Assembly: GCF_963853765.1 (NCBI RefSeq)
Contig: NC_088856.1
Coordinates: 55,800,001 to 55,864,000 of the forward strand
DNA length: 64,000 nt
Direction of reading: 5' to 3'
From: Magallana gigas
Lineage: Eukaryota
A program made the position numbers and the translations under genes. Positions 10,752 through 32,529 of the stretch are shown in pieces; the first letter of the stretch is position 1; each line of letters begins with the position of its first letter. Under the pieces are notes generated by a model that saw only the letters and a list, made by a program, of their open reading frames with translations, was not told the origin of the DNA and made no database searches.

Positions 10752-13700
10752 ATGGCTATGATTTCCGTGCGTTCTGGACTAGGTCTGTGGTGTATCATCC
10801 TGTCAGCAGGTTCAGTCACACTTACTTTACCCTTTACTCGCTTTAACTTGCAGACTTTTTAGGACAGACTCGTTCTTAAATTATAATTAATCTAAATATG
10901 TTTTTGTAAATGTTCATATGTTTGTGAACAATTTAAAGGAGCATGGTCACGTTTTTGGTCAATTTTTTTTCCAATTTTAATGTTAACTTTACAATGCTTT
11001 AGTAAGGTATTTTTAATAAACAACCAAAATTTGAGTGTCATTCGTTGAGTTATAAGCAAGTTACAGTTCTTACAATTCTTTACTATGTAAACAAAGCATT
11101 TATTTTGTTTACATTTTAAATGCTGAAGGAAAAATTCCAATTTCAAACCTAAAATGAATGTGTTAAACGTAAGAAACTGTTAATTCATGCTGAAAATTAA
11201 TAAGAAGATAACACATCAGCATGAACAAGATTTTTTACCGGTATATTAAACCTATGTAAACAAAAACAGGGCACGAGCCTTGTTTACATATCAAAGAATT
11301 ATGAGCTCTGTATCTTGCTTATTACTTAACGACTGACTCTCAAATTTCATTTGAACATTAGAAATGAATTTCTTAAGCATCTAAATAATAAAAACAGAAT
11401 TTGACCAAACTCGTGACCATGCCCCTTTAACATATAAACTAACTTAATATAAAAGTCCATTTATATGACTTCTCAATATATTTTAGATATTTCAGTGTAC
11501 TTTTTAAGTAACCCTTACGATTGAAAACGTTACCAGAAACACTGGTATTTACGGTTCACACCTACTGATTTTAGTAGTAAAGGATGTATAGACCAGAGCA
11601 CAGCGATAGCCACTGACCTATATATTGTTTGTAGTGACCACGGTTGAGGGGGCGTGTCCGGAGGGGTTTTTCCCGCATGGTGACTCTTGTTACTTCTTCT
11701 CCTCCAGCATGGAAGCTGACTGGATCGAGGCCGGGGTAATGTAAAATTACTGAGGAACGGTAACTCTGTAATATTGAGACCGAGGCCGGGATAATGTAAC
11801 GTTACTAATGAACGGTAACTCTGTAATATTAAAATAGAGGCGGGGGTAATGTAACGTTACTAATGAACGGTAACTCTGTAATATTAAGATCGAGGCCGGG
11901 ATGATGTAACGTTACTAAGAAACGGTAACTCTGTAATATTAAAATAGAGGCGGGGGTAATGTAACGTTACTAAGGAACGGTAACTCTGTAATATTGAGAT
12001 CGAGGCCGGGGTAATGTAACGTTACTAAGAAACACTAACTCTGTAATATTAAAATAGAGGCGGGGGTAATGTAACGTTACTAAGGAACGGTAACTCTGTA
12101 ATATTGAGATCGAGGCCGGGGTAATGTAACGTTACTAAGAAACGGTAACTCTGTAATATTAAGATCGAGGCCGGGGTAATGTAACGTTACTAATGAACGG
12201 TAACTCTGTAATATTAGAATAGAGGCGGGGGTAATGTAACGTTACTAAGGAACGGTAACTCTGTAATATTGAGATCGAGGCCGGGGTAATGTAACGTTAC
12301 TAAGAAACAGTAACTCTGTAATATTAAAATAGAGGCGGGGGTAATGTAACGTTACTAAGGAACGGTAACTCTGTACTATTAAGATCGAGGCCGGGATGAT
12401 GTAACGTTACTAAGAAACGGTAACTCTGTAATATTAAAATAGAGGCGGGGGTAATGTAACGTTACTAAGGAACGGTAACTCTGTAATATTGAGATCGAGG
12501 CCGGGGTAATGTAACGTTACTAAGAAACAGTAACTCTGTAATATTAAGATAGAGGCGGGGGTAATGTAACGTTACTAAGGAACGGTAACTCTGTAATATT
12601 GAGATCGAGGCCGGGGTAATGTAACGTTACTAATGAACGGTAACTCTGTAATATTGAGATCGAGGCCGGGGTAATGTAACGGTACTAAGGAACGGTTACT
12701 CTGAAATATTAAGATTTTACATCGAAGGGCAAACCCCTCTAACTGCTAATAAAGGACCTCGATATAAGAACTCTTCAGTGTATAGAATACAGTATGTCAT
12801 TAATACTCAGGTTTTACTCTACATGTACATTGAAGCAGGCACGGGCTTGGGTGATCAATAATTGAGGTTCAGAGCGACAGATTTTATGACCAAAATTCAT
12901 CCAATCAACGCATTAACGAAAAAAAATAAAGATAATTAGGATGTAATGCTAGGTAAAAATTTATTTCACTGATCTGAATTATCATCTTGGAGGAGAAACA
13001 GATAATTTTGACGTATTGCTCAACAAGTTGTCCTCTTTGCCCCTAGCTTTAATGGAAAATCGTCAAAACCGATTGTAGGTCAGAGGCACTGGAATGTAGG
13101 CGTAAATATACATGTACATACAGATAGCAAAAACAGTGACCTTATAGACGCGATTGAATGACTTCATGACATAGCTATAGGTTAAACTGTCGACAGCACA
13201 TATACAAATAAATGACGTATTTGTAGTATTAAACTTGTTGATTTGTTTGTCTTTTAATATTTTTTTTCTTTTTCAGTTTTTCTGTAACCGATTTAATGGG
13301 GGAGACTTAGTTGCCGTCGAATCGCATTCAGAAAACGAGTTTCTGTATCAAATACTACATTTTATGCGTTCAGATAGTAAGTACCTGTATAATACGATAA
13401 AGTTCATTGATTTTACGTCACGTTAATGACGTAGTGTTAAGACACACGCAGTGTTTGCATAATTATGCGAACTGAAAACAATGTAAAGAAGTTTACGAGA
13501 CTTTGGGCGTACAGATAATTTTTACGTTAATTTTCTAAATATGATATTTCATGCTGTGAACTATTATTAGACAAAGAAATCATCAAATTTTATAGCTTTA
13601 AAAATTGAATGTTTCCCATTACTTTACTGTCTGAAGGAGATTAATGTATACGTAGTGTAAAAAATGGCCGCGACCATTGAGCTTTCGTGGTGTTTTAAAA

Positions 13701-16913: not shown

Positions 16914-19900
16914 ATGTGGCACCGAGTTCTGGTATTGTGGATAACTGGACTTATACAAGGTTCTGGGTATACGTCTTCTTACTTTATAGTGAGGTGTTCA
17001 TGCATTGTTTTCTACATCAGTACAACGACGCATATTTAAGAACAAAATGAATATCTTGTAAATTCCAAATTTGTGATAAGCAAACCCTAATCTAATTACA
17101 TGTAAAGTGAGATCGTTGATCCGCTCCTAATAGATCACTACACAAAGAAGCGATCTAATAGGAGCGGATCAAAGATCTAATTTTTATTAGATTGAAGCAT
17201 GCCCCGATACATCGTTGAACTTTTTAAAAATATTCAATTTCATAAAATGTCCAAATAGCAACATGGAAAATATTTTCTTATTATATAAGTAACTTATTAA
17301 TGTGTGTCGACACAATATCTGCATGTTGGAGCCCCTGACTCGGTACAAAGACAACTGATTATTTTTACAGATAGAAACGTGATTTACTGTATGTTTTATG
17401 TATACTAATAGATACAAAATTCTATTAATATGTAATAAGCCATAAAGTTATCGTAAAAAAGAATATGGTAGTTGAAAACAAACTTATGATAAGCTTATAT
17501 TTGATAAATAATTAAAGTGGGGATTGGATGTTTTCCTAAGTTAAAAAATTTCAAATTGTGATCAACAGTCCTACTATTATTATCAACTATTATCAGAAAA
17601 GTTGTACAATTGTTGTAAATAGCTAAACATGATTTGATCCTTATATTTCAAAGTAAAAATATTCTAAATTATCAAATAATCTTAATTTTCAATAATTCAA
17701 GGAATTTGATATGAGATAAACTCTCCAATGTGTTTTTCGTACAGCTTTTACGTTGGTGGTCTTAGTATTAAATCGCTGTACATTCAATTTCATTTAAAGT
17801 ATACACAGCACAAGAGGCGTGTCCTGAGGGATTTTTCCAACATGGGACCTCCTGTTATTTCTTCTCCTCCCACCTGGCGGCAGACTGGATCGAGGCGGGG
17901 GTAATGTAACGTTACCAAGGAACGGTAACTCTGTAATATACAGATCGAGGCGGGGGTAATGTAACGTTACTATGGAACGGTAACTCTGTAATATTGAGAT
18001 CGAGGCGGCGGTAATGTAACGTTACTATGGAACGGTAACTCTGTCATATTTAGATCGAGGCGGGGGTAATGTAACGTTACTAAGAAACGGTAACTCTGCC
18101 ATATTAGGATCGAGGCGGGGGTAATATACTAGTAATCTTACTAAGGAACGGTAACTCTGTGAATTAAAGTTAAATAAATGTAAAATCGTATATTTGAATC
18201 CGCTCTTTATCTAAAATCTATGTAAATTCTATGTATAAATCGGAGATCTTATTTTTGACGATTTTGATTAATTTTATCCAGTAGAACAAATATATTAAGC
18301 TCCCTTTAAAAGAGTTAGATGTAGGTTAAAGCAATATAAGCTGCAATTTTCATGTTGGATTTTTTTGGTGAAAATGTAACTAATTACTTTAGTATTACAT
18401 TGACCAAATTAAAGTATAATAACATTATGGTTTTCAAACTTCTGTACGTTATATTTCCTAGGGGGGAGCTATTTTTCAGGCACTGATTAAAGACAAATTA
18501 CATCACTGTCGTTCAGTACAAAAATTGCTTTGCTATATATATATATATATATATTCCATTATATAGGAATCTTTATCTTTATAAGATTTTAAAGATTTAT
18601 TTTCCACCTATTCATCACCTAGGTTCACCTAAACACAGAATTATCATCTTGGCTTGTCCAGGCAGCAAAATTAAATTCTCTAAAATACAGCTCATGATGT
18701 CGTACCAGGAATATACAATGTGTAATATCAAATAATACTAAATACATGTCTTTAGTGTTTGATATTTTAGAGTTTGCAATATTACCCTCACAAATCTTTC
18801 CCGATTTACCGAAACTGAAGCCCAAGAAATCAAGTTCATAATTTCTAAAGGCGGTCGTTTTACTATGATCCAATAATATATATTAAGCATAAAAAAAATA
18901 TATTAAGTAAGGATTAAGACTTTAATTTGTAAATAATTGCTAATTCATATCCTGATGTAATTTCTATTCCAGTCTTTCTGCAGAAGGTTCAATGGTGGAG
19001 ATCTTGTTGCCATAGAAACACAATCTGAAAACACGTTTATTTACCAGCAATTACTTTTGATGCATGATCATAGTAAGAGACTTTATGAATATAAATATAA
19101 AAGTCTACGGGTATTGTATTTAAAAAAATATTACTGGTCTCGTCCTTCAATGTTTAAGTTAGTTCAACTCCTTGCCATTCATAATCGCATACAATTGTGC
19201 CATCTCGCAATGTTTCTGCGTGAGGCAGGTAAAAAACGGGATGTCGGATAACTAGTACATCCAACTGATGTATTATTACTATCACTATTATTATTAATAT
19301 TACTATTATTATCATTATTATCATTATTATAATCATTTGATTTATTGATTTATAGGGTCTCTCCTCCTATGAATGTACATGTATGAATAATATTTTTTTA
19401 GAATATTGTTTAACGTCAATAGCGAACTGTTTGATTTTGATTGGATAGAGTGTAGCATTATATATTTATAATTATGTACATATGTTTCAACAGCTTATAA
19501 TTCATTTGAATTTAGCCAATAAACAATACAATGAATAATTTACATTATCAAGTCATCATTTGCTTTGTCCTCTATCACTAATTCCTCTATTGCTAAAAAT
19601 AGTCTCTTTTTATATAAACTGAAAAAAGAGAAAGATGCCATCTTGAATTTTTTTAAGTAATTTAATAGGCTTCAAATTTCACAAAATTTTGAGAACATAC
19701 AATAAAAAATAGGCATCGAAATTGATTTCGTATATATACCTTATTAAAGAACAACGTGACCTTTAATTCCGGAATCAAGCTCAAGCACACACCGATAATC
19801 GTGCATACAATCGTTGATACATCATATAAAGCACGCACACACCGATAATTGTGTACACATTCAACCAAGCACACACACCGATACTTCTTTTAACGTACTA

Positions 19901-23325: not shown

Positions 23326-24066
23326 TTCTTCATATTGACCTCTGGCAGACAGATAAGGAATCCATTTGCCATGATTGTTCGACACACTTCTTCTCCAAGG
23401 TAAAAGTACATGTATAAGGAGAAATTGCTTTTAGATGTTAATTAAAATCGCTGGATCCTCTTTATATATATTTATAACCCAATCTTTGTTTTTTTATTTC
23501 TCCTTCATCAATGGTCAACACGTCAGGCACGTAGCATCAAGGCAGGGGGGGGGGGGGGGCAGGAGGGGCGTAACCCTCCCCCCCACGTTTTTGCGCAGCA
23601 AAGATTTTTTTTAAATTTACATACAAAAAATTGAATTAAGATAGAGTTGGTCCCCCCCCCCCCCCCACTTTTCTGCGACCATGTAAAAATTGAATTGAGA
23701 GTAAGGTAATAAACAGTGAAATTGAAGTTAAAAGTATACCTACTGCCCCCCCCCCCCCCCTCCCACGGATTAGGATTTTCAGAATTTTGGAAAGAGGCAG
23801 GGATAATGTAACGACGTGTTAGAGGCAGGGGTAAGGTAACCATGTGATAGAATGAGGGGGTAATTTAACGACGTGATAAAGGCAGGGATAATGTAACGAC
23901 GTAATACAGACAGAGGTAATGTAACGACCTAATAGAGATAGGGGTAATGTTATGACGTGATAGAGACACGGTTAATGTTATGAGGTGATAGAGACAGGGG
24001 TAATGTAACCACGTGATAGAGGCAGGGATGATGTAAAGACGTGAGAGAGACAGGGGTAATGTAACC
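23323..24066 (+). pseudogene. Decayed fourth C-type lectin copy (exon 1 and exon 2 remnants)
   Basis: ctgttcttcatattgacctctggcagacagataaggaatccatttgccATGattgttc aligns with the region before lectin 3 exon 1 (from ~26017). The exon is only 29 nt (23371-23399), so it is frameshifted and lacks the hydrophobic core. At ~23786, tggaaagaggcaggg (W-K-E-A-G) matches the exon 2 end W-I-E-A-G. Confidence 0.65.
23793..24066 (+). repeat. 28-bp minisatellite (~10 units), half-length relative of the 55-bp donor repeat
   Basis: Unit agaggcaggggtaatgtaacgacgtgat. Confidence 0.85.
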
Positions 24067-25808: not shown

Positions 25809-25941
25809 NNNNNNNNNNNNNNNNNNNNNNNNNNNNNNNNNNNNNNNNNNNNNNNNNNNNNNNNNNNNNNNNNNNNNNNNNNNNNNNNNNNNNNNNNNNN
25901 NNNNNNNNNNNNNNNNNNNNNNNNNNNNNNNNNNNNNNNNN
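25809..25941. other. Assembly gap (N run)
   Basis: 133 consecutive N. Confidence 0.99.
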
Positions 25942-26064: not shown

Positions 26065-26133
26065 ATGATGATTGTTCAATATGCTAATGTCGTATTTTTG
26101 GCGATTCTCCTTCTCAAAGGTACATATAGTAGA

Positions 26134-26193
<60 letters not shown>

Positions 26194-29100
26194 ATTAAAT
26201 AACTAGCACAAACAATAGTTTTATACCGATAAGCCATCACCATAACCAACAAAGTAAAGAAATACATATAAAAAATTATATCTTAATTATTACCATTGCT
26301 CACTGCCAAAACTACATTGTTTTGGACATACGCAGCAGTTGTGTAACCGACGAATTTTATGGATTACAAAAAAAAATACCAATACAATTAAAAGACACAC
26401 TATATAAATAGTGCCTGTTTGGGAGGGTAACTGTTGAAATTGACACCCCGAGAAAACTATTGTCAACCGACGCGAAATGGAGGTTGACAATGGTTTTCGA
26501 GGGGTGTCAATTTCAACAGTTATCCTCCCAAACAGGCACTATTTATTTTATAATATTGAATGTCATATTTTCTGCTTTTATATAGAAATGAAGTGAATTC
26601 TACGGCGAACCGAACGCGCATAATTTACGCGTGTGTAACAATTCGTTGTGTTACCCGTTGTCAAGTGTGTTGCTTACGCTGAGGGTAATAGAACGGATTA
26701 ACATGAAAGTTTGATAAAAAATAATGTACCCACGATAAGTTTACCAACGAAGTTAAGTACCCACATAGCTGTGTATTTACAAATTTACAAGGTGATGCAC
26801 CCACAAGGTGATGCACCCACAAGGTAAATGTACCCACGAATAAATGTAACCACGAAGTAATGTGCCAAAAAAAGGTTATGCTTCAACAAATCAATGCACA
26901 TACAAAGTAAAGCACTCATAAAATTTCACCCAATATTAACTAAAGTACCAACAAATTATGTACCCATAGACTAATGCATACACAAAGAAATGTAACTTAC
27001 ATGTGCTACATCTTTTCACTTTTCCTGAAAACAAAATATATGAATTCATTCAGTACACGAGATCTGTATGTAAATTAATCCATGCTTTATCCAATAAATT
27101 CAGGATTTATACGTGTTCTGTCACTAAATACAAAGAAAAAATAAATTCATTAATTTTTCAAAATTGTGAAGTAATGCCGTAAAGTTTGGGTTAGAGTTTA
27201 ATAGTTTTTGTGGCTAAAGAAATATTTAAATAAAAAACGACTACATTGATAACAACACATGTGGTTTACTATCATTGGTTTCATATTGGTTTAATTGTTT
27301 TTGTCCTTGAGAAAAACGAGCTCAAAACATTTAATTAGATTTGTTTAATATTGCTGTTTATGGTTTATAGTAAACACGGCCCAGGAAGTGTGCCCTGAGG
27401 GTTTTATGAAGCACGGAGAGTCATGTTACTTCTTCTCCTCCCATCTGGCGGCAGACTGGATCGAGGCGGGGGTAATGTAACATTACTATGGAACGGTAAC
27501 TCTGTAATATTTAGATCGAGCAGGAGGTAATGTAACGTTACTAAGGAACCGTTACTAAAGAACGGTAACTCTGTTTTATTAAGATGGATGCGGAGGTAAT
27601 GTAGCGTTACTAAGGAACGGTAGCTCTGCAATATTCAGATCGAGGTGGAGGTAATATAACATAACTAACTTAAAGGAACGGTAACTATGTAATATTGAGA
27701 TCGAGGCAAAGATAATGTAACGTTACTAAGGAACAGTTACTCTGTCATATTTAGATCGAGGCGGGGGTAATGTAACGTTACTTAGGAACGGTAACTCTGT
27801 AAATATAAATATTTAATTCAAATCCACTATTAAAATTCTTTCAAACATGTAAATGTATTCATGTAATGATAAAAGCGTATTCTACATGTAACTACGTGTA
27901 TATTTTCATTATCAACATGAACGTTCAACCTGACTTTGATAATTTACTTTTGGATATCTATAAAAAAAAAATAAAACTATCAATGCTCGGACATGCATCA
28001 TTTTGGGTAAAAACAGGACTGCGTTCAAGATCGTAGCAGCTTTCCCAGCCGCTAGGTCGTAGATATTTAGGTCTATTGAACGGACGGCTCGGTTAGCCGC
28101 TATGTCTCAGATTTGAAGTTGGAAATATTTAACTAAAGACTAATAACATTAACATATTAATTTTTTAAAATCAAGTGGAAATGTAGATGTTAAAATTCAT
28201 TGTAACTCATAGGATGAACAAAATATCAGTAAATAAATAAATTTCATGTTTGTTACAAAGAGGTTACTATGGTGGCCATCTTGAATTTGATGCTTAACAT
28301 AAAATATTTAGGCTACGAATATCTACGTAGTGGCAAGGTTAGCTTATCGTTCAACAGCGTAGCTGCTACGTAGCCATACGCAGCAGCTCCGAACTTGAAA
28401 GCAACCCAGATCACATGTACTGAGTATAAGGTACATGTATATAAAATATATATGGTAATTAAATGCAATAATTATCGCATTCATACGAATGTCCACATGA
28501 TAAGAATTTGTTGATTTGATTTTGACAGTTTGTTATTGTCATTTTTTTCATTCATTACATGAAAAGTATTAATTTCCGGTTCAGTCTTTCTGCAAGAGAT
28601 TCAATGGAGGAGACCTTGTTGCCATACAGACGCAATCCGAGAACGAGTTTATATACCAGCATTTACTCTCTATACCCCAGCACCGTGACAGTAAGAGTTT
28701 ATATACCAGCATTTACTCTCTATACCCCAGCACCGTGACAGTAAGAGTTTATATACCAGCATTTACTCTCTATACCCCAGCACCGTGACAGTAAGAGTTT
28801 ATATACCAGCATTTAATCTCTATACCCCAGCACCGTGTCAGAACGAGTTTATATACCAGCATTTACTCTCTATACCCCAGCACCGTGACAGTAAGAGTTT
28901 ATATACCAGCATTTACTCTCTATACCCCAGCACCGTGACAGTAAGAACGAGTTTATATACCAGCATTTAATCTCTATACCCCAGCACCGTGTCAGTAAGA
29001 GTTTATATACCAGCATTTACTCTCTATACCCCAGCACCGTGACAGTAAGAGTTTATATACCAGCATTTACTCTCTATACCCCAGCACCGTGACAGTAAGA

Positions 29101-30543
29101 ACGAGTTTATATACCAGCATTTACTCTCTATACCCCAGCACCGTGACAGTAAGAGTTTATATACCAGCATTTACTCTCTATACCCCAGCACCGTGACAGT
29201 AAGAGTTTATATACCAGCATTTACTCTCTATACCCCAGCACCGTGACAGTAAGAGTTTATATACCAGCATTTACTCTCTGTACCCCAGCACCGTGACAGT
29301 AAGAACGAGTTTATATACCAGCATTTACTCTCTATACCCCAGCACCGTGACAGTAAGAGTTTATATACCAGCATTTACTCTCTATACCCCAGCACCGTGA
29401 CAGTAAGAACGAGTTTATATACCAGCATTTACTCTCTATACCCCAGCACCGTGACAGTAAGAGTTTATATACCAGCATTTACTCTCTATACCCCAGCACC
29501 GTGACAGTAAGAGTTTATATACCAGCATTTACTCTCTATACCCCAGCACCGTGACAGTAAGAGTTTATATACCAGCATTTACTCTCTATACCCCAGCACC
29601 GTGACAGTAAGAACGAGTTTATATACCATTTACTCTCTATACCCCAGCACCGTGACAGTAAGAATGAGTTTATATACCAGCATTTACTCTCTATACCCCA
29701 GCACCGTGACAGTAAGAGTTTATATACCAGCATTTACTCTCTATACCCCAGCACCGTGACAGTAAGAACTGTGTTTGTTTAACTGTTAAACCTGCGTGGA
29801 TGATACGCTATCTATAAAACAATGAGTGCTTGAACTTATATTGATGTTATTTGGCGTATAGATGATTTCTGGATCGGAGGGACGGACGAGTTTGTAGAGG
29901 GACACTGGGTCTGGATTTCCACGATGCAGAGGCTGGGCTTCACCGACTGGTACCCGGGGAACCCCAGCGACAGCGGCTCCAACGAGGATTGCTTGGAGAT
30001 CATGGTTGGCCTCTCGGCATCCCCGCGTCACTACTGGAACGATGAGGATTGTTCCAAGAAGGCCAACTTTATCTGCGAAGTCCCGTATGTTCATTCTAAC
30101 ACCATTTTTCCATACATGTTTCTGAAACGTTGCAACATGATTTCACTTTTGTTTGATTGCCAAATTAAATTCCAAAATTCAGGCTCAATCCAACGTCAGG
30201 CACATTGCATATCATGGTGGGAGTTATTATATCACTTTTTCGCAGAAAAGTTTTACTTATTTTACATACAGAAAATTAAATTGAAATATCATGAAGTTTG
30301 CTCTCCACTTTTTGGGAAGTAAAAAAAAGTGTAAATAAGAAAATTAACAATGAAATTTAAATTAATGGTTATTTGTGGTTTTTATGCTTGTCAAGATATT
30401 TTGGATGAGTCGCTCCCCTCTCAATAACGATGCTACGTGTCTGAAGGGTTTATTATCTTCAATATGAAACCCGCGTTTTTCTCAGACACCGTTTTTTTTT
30501 TTGCATTTGTTTCAGAATGTCAGAGGGTCTAATAGTTGGCTAA
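26065..30543 (+). CDS. Secreted C-type lectin, perlucin-like, copy 3 (170 aa)
   Basis: Exons 26065-26119 (MMIVQYANVVFLAILLLK), 27371-27471, 28585-28690, 29862-30084 (FWIGGTD...WYPGNPSD...WNDEDC...FICE), 30516-30543 (PMSEGLIVG*). Total 513 nt, in frame. Confidence 0.9.
26137..26191. repeat. (CT)n microsatellite
   Basis: Perfect dinucleotide run in lectin 3 intron 1. Confidence 0.97.
26406..26544. mobile_element. Long palindrome (~63-bp arms), core of a palindromic MITE
   Basis: aaatagtgcctgtttgggagggtaactgttgaaattgacacccc...ttgtcaacc / ggttgacaa...ggggtgtcaatttcaacagttatcctcccaaacaggcactattt. Confidence 0.75.
27458..27802 (+). repeat. 55-bp exon-2/donor minisatellite (~6 diverged units) in lectin 3
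   Basis: Donor-like positions at about 27472, 27527, 27596, 27651, 27712, 27767. Confidence 0.85.
28021..28403. mobile_element. ~380-bp TIR element in lectin 3 intron 2; inverted fragment at ~30965-31085
   Basis: Ends gcgttcaagatcgtagc / gctccgaacttgaaagc; the ttaggctacgaatatctac...cgtagctgctacgtagc block recurs reverse-complemented near 31000-31085. Confidence 0.55.
28641..29768 (+). repeat. 50/54-bp minisatellite (~22 units) built from the lectin 3 exon 3 end plus splice donor
   Basis: Unit gagtttatataccagcatttactctctataccccagcaccgtgaca|gtaa, with an optional gaac; nearly identical copies. Confidence 0.97.
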
Positions 30544-31662
30544 CATTAAGGTAGATCCTTGACGTCTACCGATTACTTCATCCCTACAAAATTCGGAAAT
30601 ATGTGTGTGGATCATCACATTTATTAGAATATGAATATACATTGATTTGTACCGAAATAAAAGTTTCATCAAACGCGATTGCTGTTTGTTCTCAATTTCA
30701 CCTGATTTCTAATCCTTACACTTTAAGCGGATTTCCACTCAATCAAATAAGTAGTTCTAAAATATAAAAAAATCTCTCACTTGAGCGCAACATTTTCATG
30801 GACTTCAAGACAATATTTTGATCAGTAATTTACTGGTAGTATCCAGTCTGCGTTATAAAAGAACACACCTACAGAATAATTGAGGATGTAAATATTTTAG
30901 CGAGACAATATTACAACATGTACCCTTCATGATGGGTGTGACAATGACAGTTGAGCCAGAGATGTGTTCAAGAACATAGCTGCTACACAGTGCTACGTAG
31001 TAACTACGCTATTGAGCAGTAAGCTAGTCAGCCCCCAAGTGTAGATACTCGTAGCCTAAATTTTTAATGCTTTAATCAAATTCATTCTGGCTACATCAGT
31101 TACCACTTTGTAACAAGCACGAAATCTGTTTTATCAAGTGATATTTCATTTATCGTAAAACTGTAAGTTATAATGATTTTTATTATGTATTTCATGTATA
31201 TTCCCGATTGTAATTTAAACTTCTCTAAATCACAGCATAATACACTGTCCCGTAAAGTTAAGAATATTTCTTTTATAATAAATTGTAACAGTACCAGGAA
31301 TAATATTATAAAAAGAAAGATTTTAACGTCAAGCGCCCGTGTATCAACACTATACATGTAGTATGGCGGCGGTGGTGTTACATGTATTTGTAAATGAACA
31401 ATGCATGTTTTCAAAACTGCAAAGAAAATTGACTGAAAATGTGGGATGGCAGTAGGAGATATACACATTGCAGTAGGTTATGAAAACAAAGATGTGTTTA
31501 GTTCATCTTCATATCAATACTGTGTTGTCTCTTTAAAACACATTGGATTTTGTAAGCAATATAATGTCTATAATTAAACGTGCACATAATGCTTTGTTGG
31601 CATTTTATGATAAAACTATAAATGAAACAACATGTGAAAAAGATGGGGTTTATCCAACTATT

Positions 31663-32529
31663 TTATTCATTCATTCTACCAAATATAATTTCATACAGTT
31701 CCTTATCAAGTACTTGAGAGTAAGAATGAAATAAATAGAGTTTTTCTTTCTTGTTATAAAGTTCAAACTTTGAGTACACTAAATTTACATGAGAAACTTC
31801 TGACAGAGGCTTCACATTCTCTATCTTATAAAATGAATCCTTCCTGTTTCCAAAGAAAGACAGCCGCGACACTTGGAGAGTGTCTACAACATCACCCACC
31901 CCTCCCACGAACATGCTTCCTATCATGCGCGGCATCATGTAGAAAACCAGCGGCATCAACATCACGTTAGTCACCACGAAGCCCATCATCATGTACGACG
32001 CCGCGGGAACCGTACAGAGGTAAGCCACCGCCGTTGGAAACAGAGTGGAATACACCAACAACTGAAATCTCTGCACGATTCTTATGATGTTAATGGGAGG
32101 AAAGAAATAGATACATTTGTACTCGAGCTTAGGACGTCCCACCTCTCTGTCCTGATCGTCCGTAGAGACCACCTCCCTATTTGGCTCAGTTTGACTTTCC
32201 CCTCCCTGGGTGGTTCCTGTGATTTCCCCACCCTGGGTGGTTCCTGTGGTTTCCCCACTATGTGGGGTTCCTGATTTCCCTGTTTTACAATGCAGCCTTA
32301 CATCTGTTGTAAATGATTTTCGAAGAAGATCCAAAATATTTTTTGTATTCCTCACCATATCCTTAGAGTGACACACACTGTTCACAACTCTTTGGGGACC
32401 CAGCAATTCATATTCACTACCTCTGGCTGCTTGGCTGCAGTGGTTTCTCCTGACAGTTTGGTGTTGTGTATAAATGGAGGAAATGATTTGTCTCTCCACC
32501 ACACAAAGATACCTCAAAGACAAGGTCAT
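31663..32529 (-). CDS. TMEM186: Transmembrane protein 186 (mitochondrial), single coding exon, 288 aa
   Basis: ORF with basic/hydroxylated presequence-like N-terminus; YKCIYFFPPINIIRIVQRFQL, two hydrophobic segments, then LQVSRLSFFGNRKD, matching my recall of the TMEM186 family (related to TMEM70). Confidence 0.75.
   Translation of the reverse strand: MTLSLRYLCVVERQIISSIYTQHQTVRRNHCSQAARGSEYELLGPQRVVNSVCHSKDMVRNTKNILDLLRKSFTTDVRLHCKTGKSGTPHSGETTGTTQGGEITGTTQGGESQTEPNREVVSTDDQDREVGRPKLEYKCIYFFPPINIIRIVQRFQLLVYSTLFPTAVAYLCTVPAASYMMMGFVVTNVMLMPLVFYMMPRMIGSMFVGGVGDVVDTLQVSRLSFFGNRKDSFYKIENVKPLSEVSHVNLVYSKFELYNKKEKLYLFHSYSQVLDKELYEIIFGRMNE

Follow-up and report, generated by a model that had tools for sequence, protein, structure and literature searches.

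Intron 3 of the gene that we call lectin 3, a C-type lectin gene of the oyster Magallana gigas, consists almost entirely of tandem copies of the end of exon 3 together with its 5' splice site. The gene lies in a 64,000-nucleotide (nt) stretch of contig NC_088856.1 (RefSeq assembly GCF_963853765.1, positions 55,800,001 to 55,864,000), hereafter the window; all positions below refer to the window and all features are on the forward (+) strand. We interpret the array as a boundary-spanning ('mirage') minisatellite, i.e. a tolerated by-product of slippage and unequal exchange, in which the first donor is used and the downstream copies are removed with the intron, and we assign this reading a probability of roughly 0.8. 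The identity of the host gene follows from a protein search with the exon 4 frame, which retrieved a 170-residue NCBI model of M. gigas named 'perlucin' (P0001). P0001 and its relatives match Pfam PF00059 (precomputed), and the conserved cysteine and WIGGTD/WND framework is present.

The array extends from 28641 to 29765 and comprises 22 head-to-tail units of 50 or 54 nt, as established with Tandem Repeats Finder (TRF) and by splitting by hand. TRF reports a single array (28645-29767; period 50, also 154 and 204; 22.0 copies, 94% matches, score 1960). This bears out a first-pass annotation, made by a model from the letters of the window, which had described the intron as nearly filled by about 22 copies of its own exon end and donor. 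Exon 3 (28585-28690, SFCKRFNGGDLVAIQTQSENEFIYQHLLSIPQHRD), defined by P0001, the rebuilt protein and an RNA contig, ends ...CAC CGT GAC A/GTAAGA, where the slash marks the exon-intron boundary. Beyond it, the final 46-50 bases of the exon recur together with GTAA in almost perfect copies. The genuine exon 3 terminus, its last 50 nt, makes up unit 1 together with GTAA, and is fixed by P0001 and by an RNA joint. When the array is cut at each GTAA, seven units are 54 nt long and start with GAAC, one has 51 nt and the others have 50 nt. By this cut, units 4 and 5 come out at 46 and 54 nt; they actually represent a 50-nt unit with its donor lost: at their junction (28837-28846) GTAAGAG is changed to GAACGAG, the sole donor-less junction in the array, and the unit in the same register in M. 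angulata has an intact GTAAGAG. The unit types follow each other in the order ABBCABDBBABBEABABBBFGB and are grouped in higher-order blocks of 104, 154 and 204 nt.

The hexamer GTAAGA is found 21 times, in every case within the identical 9-nt context ACA/GTAAGA. One of these is the authentic 5' splice site (28691-28696), a donor seen in mRNA and placed by both P0001 (..HRD/NDFW..) and the joint of a contig from RNA run X15 to position 29862. The other 20 are reiterated copies within intron 3 (28741-29767), located by unit splitting and in the rebuilt mRNAs. Downstream of the array 96 nt of unique sequence (GAACTGTG...TATAG, 29766-29861) harbour the 3' splice site, close to the remainder of about 93 nt claimed before. 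Intron 3 is 1171 nt long in total, and its final donor copy and the unique tail make up a short intron of about 100 nt.

A tract resembling an acceptor, CTCTCTATACCCCAG, is present in every unit (e.g. 28668-28690), 10 nt ahead of the donor; a potential 3' splice site is thereby reiterated as well. Recursive splicing was considered and rejected: the distance between CTCTCTATACCCCAG and the donor is 10 nt, and its use would add 10 nt and shift the frame. No joint at CTCTCTATACCCCAG is listed among the RNA joints for 29253-31200.

We rebuilt the mRNA in silico for each of the 21 donors. Donor 1 yields the intact 170-residue lectin. Donor 2 inserts 50 nt and shifts the frame, leading to a stop in exon 4 that lies 187 nt before the last exon junction; with donors 3-21 the frame ends in the third unit, where a TGA precedes that junction by 225-1196 nt. 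The 54-nt unit comprises exactly 18 sense codons (NEFIYQHLLSIPQHRDSK) and is stop-free, while the 50-nt units cause a frameshift. The rebuilt mRNAs are thus in full agreement with the first-pass annotation, according to which only the first donor gives an intact lectin, the second adds 50 nt and further reading stops in the third unit, and which had also given the 54-nt units as 18 codons and the 50-nt units as frame-shifting. For donor copies 2-21 the rebuilt transcripts predict the premature stops that characterize unproductive splicing.

RNA contigs and reads were aligned to positions 29253-31200, i.e. the last 10 units, the tail and exons 4 and 5. Record 1 of the X15 contigs (159 nt, depth 43.7) contains 75 nt ending ...GAGACCTTGTTGCCATACAGACGCAATCCG, which belong to the unique part of exon 3, followed by the 51-nt exon end and a GT..AG joint to 29862. 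The aligner put the exon end on a 54-type unit. This contig is first-donor mRNA. The aligned joints on either side of exon 4 read 29456 to 29862 and 30084 to 30516, both GT..AG. Splicing from the first donor is also found in the NCBI models of both M. gigas and M. angulata. The sole exon 3-exon 4 junction recovered therefore uses donor 1; it is represented by one contig, and minor use of other donors is below this resolution. No X15 contig spans any unit junction, even though the depth at the exon 3-exon 4 junction is 43.7; holes in contig data as such prove nothing. As the junction words occur 5-14 times per array, modest intron retention or decoy use should nevertheless have given rise to X15 contigs.

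The array differs in copy number between the window (22 units) and M. angulata (28 units), where the unit order is ABBHIBDJBDBDKBBBHJBDBBDBLBBB. The first seven units are in register in the two taxa, which also agree at the end of the array and in the tail. In the interior, unit number, order and private variants differ, whereas the flanks are 97-98.7% identical. The length polymorphism postulated in the first-pass annotation is therefore real, with a different internal order, and is seen between two taxa. Both alleles on hand, from the window and from M. angulata, start with units of 54, 50 and 50 nt; an allele beginning with in-frame 54-nt decoys is hypothetical.

Intron 3 of the paralogue lectin 2 (960 nt) has no repeat, nor does intron 3 of lectin 1. 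TRF finds no tandem repeat in the 17-kb C. virginica lectin cluster (L022), in which intron 3 of the first gene measures about 138 nt. The position and phase of intron 3 (N/GTAAG) are common to all compared lectin genes, i.e. the paralogues and those of C. virginica. Since neither the paralogues nor C. virginica have the array, it arose in the lectin 3 lineage of Magallana, where it would have expanded intron 3 from about 100-140 nt to 1171 nt. The conservation expected of a regulatory element is not observed: lectin 1, lectin 2 and the C. virginica cluster are without the array, and the unit order is unstable between M. gigas and M. angulata. The absence from relatives, together with the unstable structure, is more in keeping with a neutral minisatellite than with a conserved regulator.

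A Logan contig from another run (L021) provides a further comparison, with 91-94% identity over intron 4 and the 3' flank (compared with window positions 29740-32217) and with both the array end and the exon 4 frame retained. L021 represents a second haplotype or a close species, and shows high allelic divergence at the lectin cluster.

The first-pass annotation had treated this arrangement as unusual, which it is not, as the class has already been described (PMC1557585, PMC3087553). In the definition of Borensztajn et al. 2006 the first minisatellite monomer spans an exon-intron boundary and the donor is reiterated within the intron (PMC1557585). The lectin 3 array belongs to this class: it is a tandem array, its first unit lies over the junction, its copy number varies (between taxa) and the mRNA is spliced from the most upstream donor. 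Among the human cases, intron 7 of F7 carries 5-9 copies of a 37-bp unit and the first donor alone is used; although functional, the pseudo-sites never competed with the most upstream donor in F7 minigenes (50 constructs) (PMC1557585). The lectin 3 array resembles F7 in the first unit lying over the boundary, in its identical reiterated donors, in its polymorphic copy number and in splicing from the most upstream donor. It differs in that the F7 unit, present in 5-9 copies, consists of 4 bp of exon and 33 bp of intron, and in that the first-donor rule was derived there from 50 minigene constructs, compared to one RNA contig and a gene model in the oyster.

LMNB2 has 10-15 copies of a 100-bp unit which cover most of the intron, and the authentic donor alone is used (de Stanchina et al. 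1997, cited in PMC1557585). Splicing from the authentic, first donor of a reiterated set is what the oyster gene shares with LMNB2; in contrast, the latter is a vertebrate gene with a 100-bp unit, while the oyster unit has 50 or 54 nt, only 4 nt of which are intronic. In PDGFA 16-18 copies of an 81-bp unit are found (PMC1557585). IFI6 (6-16) contains 25 pseudo-sites, the two nearest of which are also used, and among the 15-20 repeats of CBS the two nearest pseudo-sites are used as well (PMC1557585, citing Turri 1995, Yang 2000 and Lievers 2001 for IFI6/CBS). In these two genes a minisatellite likewise supplies many donor copies, but the two nearest pseudo-donors are active, whereas donor 2 of the oyster gene would cause a frameshift and no sign of its use was found. 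Invertebrate examples are the 'mirages' of amphioxus, minisatellite-like arrays in Adh3 and globin genes that duplicate exon-intron boundaries in tandem, with unstable length between haplotypes and undisturbed splicing (PMC3087553). Adh3 and the globins BflGb6 and BflGb9 share with lectin 3 the invertebrate setting, the instability in length between haplotypes and the undisturbed splicing, and concerted evolution within the array is a further likeness. In contrast to the oyster array, which is donor-side and has more copies, the amphioxus cases include acceptor-side duplications, with units of 10-160 bp. In a report on intronic minisatellites of C. elegans (PMC4039745) we found no mention of donor or cryptic-site terms.

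The sequence offers a plausible route for the birth of the array. AGAAC is present in exon 3 at 28640-28644, and the start of the intron, as read at the end of the array, is GTAAGAAC; the two AGAAC copies are 54 nt apart. This microhomology fits the origin by slippage between exon and intron start that had been suggested in the first-pass annotation. A tandem duplication would have comprised 50 nt from the end of exon 3 and 4 nt from the start of intron 3, probably via slippage between the exonic AGAAC and that at the intron start. The 50-nt unit equals the 54-nt unit minus GAAC, and a 4-nt loss (GAAC, by deletion between GA repeats) may have produced it, although either unit type could have been first. 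Unequal exchange would then have expanded the 50/54 mixture to 22-28 copies and would still be reshuffling it; the periodicities of 104, 154 and 204 nt point to unequal exchange of blocks. The first donor is presumably preferred because no other lies next to the unique exon 3 body and its upstream acceptor, with the choice made by exon definition or by a 5'-to-3' first-come rule of the kind demonstrated experimentally for human F7. The 20 downstream donor copies would be removed with the intron, and any transcript spliced from a copy would acquire a premature stop and should undergo nonsense-mediated decay. An array handled in this way may be neutral or nearly so.

An assembly artefact or a wrongly expanded repeat is extremely improbable as an explanation of the array. 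Short-read contigs do break inside it, and the exact count of 22 units in the source animal is that of the assembly alone. However, the independent chromosome-level assembly of M. angulata (L023, GCA_025612915.2) contains the array at the same place in the orthologous gene, with the same first and last units, so that the array as such is not an artefact. The private unit variants (types C, E, F and G) further argue against a collapsed or padded repeat. In addition, the unrelated RNA run X16 has contigs across both unit-junction types (50-type and 54-type), and a branch is implied in a third sample: L021 begins at the first 31-mer that separates the array end (..GTAAGAACT) from the 54-type internal junction (..GTAAGAACG), and a k=31 assembly would not break at this point unless the sample contained both continuations, so that the 54-type junction is present in that sample too. 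It is just as hard to believe that the end of exon 3 was recruited from a pre-existing satellite or a transposon-borne minisatellite, with the exon copied from the repeat. Oyster genomes are rich in minisatellites, and the window alone has about 10 arrays. Against this origin, a two-unit probe of 100 nt gave no match outside this locus in the 564-Mb assembly, from which it follows that the array is neither a dispersed satellite nor part of a transposon. Moreover, array-free paralogues and orthologues have an exon 3 end homologous to that of lectin 3 codon for codon (..NxFIYQxLL..), and their intron phase is identical.

A functional alternative to the tolerated minisatellite, put forward in the first-pass annotation, is that the reiterated donors act as decoys. 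Splicing from downstream copies would produce premature stops and decay, the length and unit order of the array would set lectin output, and alleles starting with 54-nt units would add 18-residue repeats to the protein. This is consistent with all 20 copies keeping the authentic 9-nt donor, with the location of the premature stop more than 55 nt upstream of the last junction for every copy and with the different array lengths in the two taxa. The use of proximal pseudo-donors in human IFI6 and CBS (PMC1557585) may be taken in the same sense, by analogy, as may the array-junction words that X16 yields despite zero depth in the unique tail, although these depths are ambiguous. On the other hand, the only recovered exon 3-exon 4 junction is that of donor 1, X15 is without array-junction contigs at a junction depth of 43.7, and the pseudo-sites are silent in F7, LMNB2 and PDGFA (PMC1557585). 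The array is also missing from the paralogues and C. virginica, its structure turns over rapidly, and with both alleles starting 54, 50, 50 no in-frame allele has been seen. Taken together, we consider the decoy function unlikely.

Several observations weigh against the tolerated-minisatellite reading, in which the copies stay silent. The X16 contigs over unit junctions have depths of 34 (50-type) and 17.5 (54-type), corresponding to about 2.5-3.5 per genomic copy compared to about 29 in exon 4 and 38 in exon 3, i.e. roughly a tenth of the mRNA, and at the same time the unique tail and intron 4 have zero depth. This signal could stem from pre-mRNA, lariat or DNA at a depth where single-copy words vanish, but splicing from far-downstream donors to some extent could be another source. 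From the raw-read RNA runs X22 and X23 we obtained 8 and 7 reads, respectively, with no usable junctions. The X23 reads carry lectin 2 letters (29918, 29951-29953, 29959 and 29975) and have a loose end formed by the lectin 2 exon 3 terminus, which identifies them as cross-mapped lectin 2 mRNA. Furthermore, steady-state RNA conceals isoforms that are degraded, and the IFI6 and CBS precedents suggest that silence of the oyster copies is not guaranteed. Finally, neutrality is deduced from instability and lack of conservation alone.

The remaining structure of the gene was obtained by mapping P0001 back onto the window with tblastn, rebuilding the mRNA and checking the splice phases; joined together, exons 1-5 encode exactly the 170 residues of P0001. 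Exon 1 (26065-26119), with the start codon and the signal peptide MMIVQYANVVFLAILLLK, and exon 2 (27371-27471), which ends ..WIEAG at the donor GGG/GTAATG, are supported by tblastn and the rebuilt protein. Exon 4 (29862-30084) encodes the remaining C-type lectin domain (..WND..FICEVP) and is defined by the protein model and RNA joints. The coding part of exon 5 (30516-30543; MSEGLIVG, stop TAA at 30541-30543) is based on tblastn and an RNA joint. A run of 133 N at 25809-25941, about 120 nt upstream of the lectin 3 start codon, leaves the promoter and 5' untranslated region only partly readable. The window contains three tandem lectin paralogues, lectin 1 (exon 3 at about 13283), lectin 2 (exon 3 at 18973) and lectin 3, the gene with the array.

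Lectins 2 and 3 share about 53 nt at the start of exon 4 (29865-29917). In X16 contig record 11 (window 29865-30674) the end of lectin 2 exon 3 is joined to lectin 3 exons 4 and 5 with a single mismatch. This record is most likely a de Bruijn chimera formed through the shared stretch; trans-splicing, read-through splicing from lectin 2 to lectin 3 or a gene-conversion allele are less likely origins. The X15 lectin 3 allele has a T>C change at 30086 that converts the intron 4 donor from GT to GC, and a 521-nt X15 contig (29921-30441, depth 15.3) continues uninterrupted from exon 4 into intron 4. With the C allele at 30086, intron 4 may thus be retained in an allele-specific manner, which would replace the C-terminal MSEGLIVG.

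Lectin 3 carries two boundary-spanning arrays, one after exon 2 and one after exon 3. The former (27459-27802, TRF) has a 55-nt unit composed of 13 nt of the exon 2 end and 42 nt of intron 2, in about six diverged copies. The same minisatellite is present in lectin 1 (11723-12715, 18 copies) and lectin 2 (17888-18167, 5 copies), and a genome search shows that the 55-nt unit is confined to these three genes. Exon 2 of lectins 1, 2 and 3 ends ..GATCGAGGC(C or G)GGG/GTAATG, and in all three the junction lies in the first 55-nt unit. With 67-89% matches, the exon 2 array appears to be older than the exon 3 array. Several copies in the lectin 3 exon 2 array read GAG/GTAATG and are closer to the donor consensus than the authentic GGG/GTAATG. 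The conserved protein sequence ..WIEAG/SFC.. nevertheless requires the first donor of exon 2 despite these better-matching copies. Between lectins 2 and 3 there is a 28-nt minisatellite (23793-24065; 743-1015 in L023) that shares the 14-nt core GGGGTAATGTAACG with the exon 2 array and may be a relic of the boundary array of another lectin copy.

As a single locus, the lectin 3 array contributes one case from a mollusc to a class known from human genes and amphioxus, and carries little weight alone. It does offer a clean natural experiment on how a 5' splice site is chosen in an invertebrate: if the last donor were used, the intron would have about 100 nt and be similar in size to the 138-nt intron of C. 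virginica, yet the donor seen in mRNA lies 1.07 kb further upstream. Arrays of this kind can be mis-handled by pipelines for gene prediction and for short-read variants, and the one in lectin 3 is a hypervariable marker within an immune or shell-type lectin cluster. Assuming some 10 arrays in 64 kb, a donor density of about 0.35 per kb and a founder segment of 50 nt, we roughly estimate that some 2% of arrays would span a donor by chance, which would amount to the order of a thousand donor-spanning arrays in the genome, so that their occurrence would call for no special mechanism. That the oyster genome carries donor-side boundary minisatellites systematically, and not as isolated accidents, as the two arrays of this lectin gene might suggest, seems very unlikely to us. 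If it were true, with an excess over random birth or a strong one of donor-side over acceptor-side arrays, it would point to a mutational process linked to splice sites or to selection on arrays of U1-binding sites, for example where immune-lectin output is set by copy number through unproductive splicing. An effect of copy number on lectin expression, if true, would be of some interest for oyster immunogenetics.

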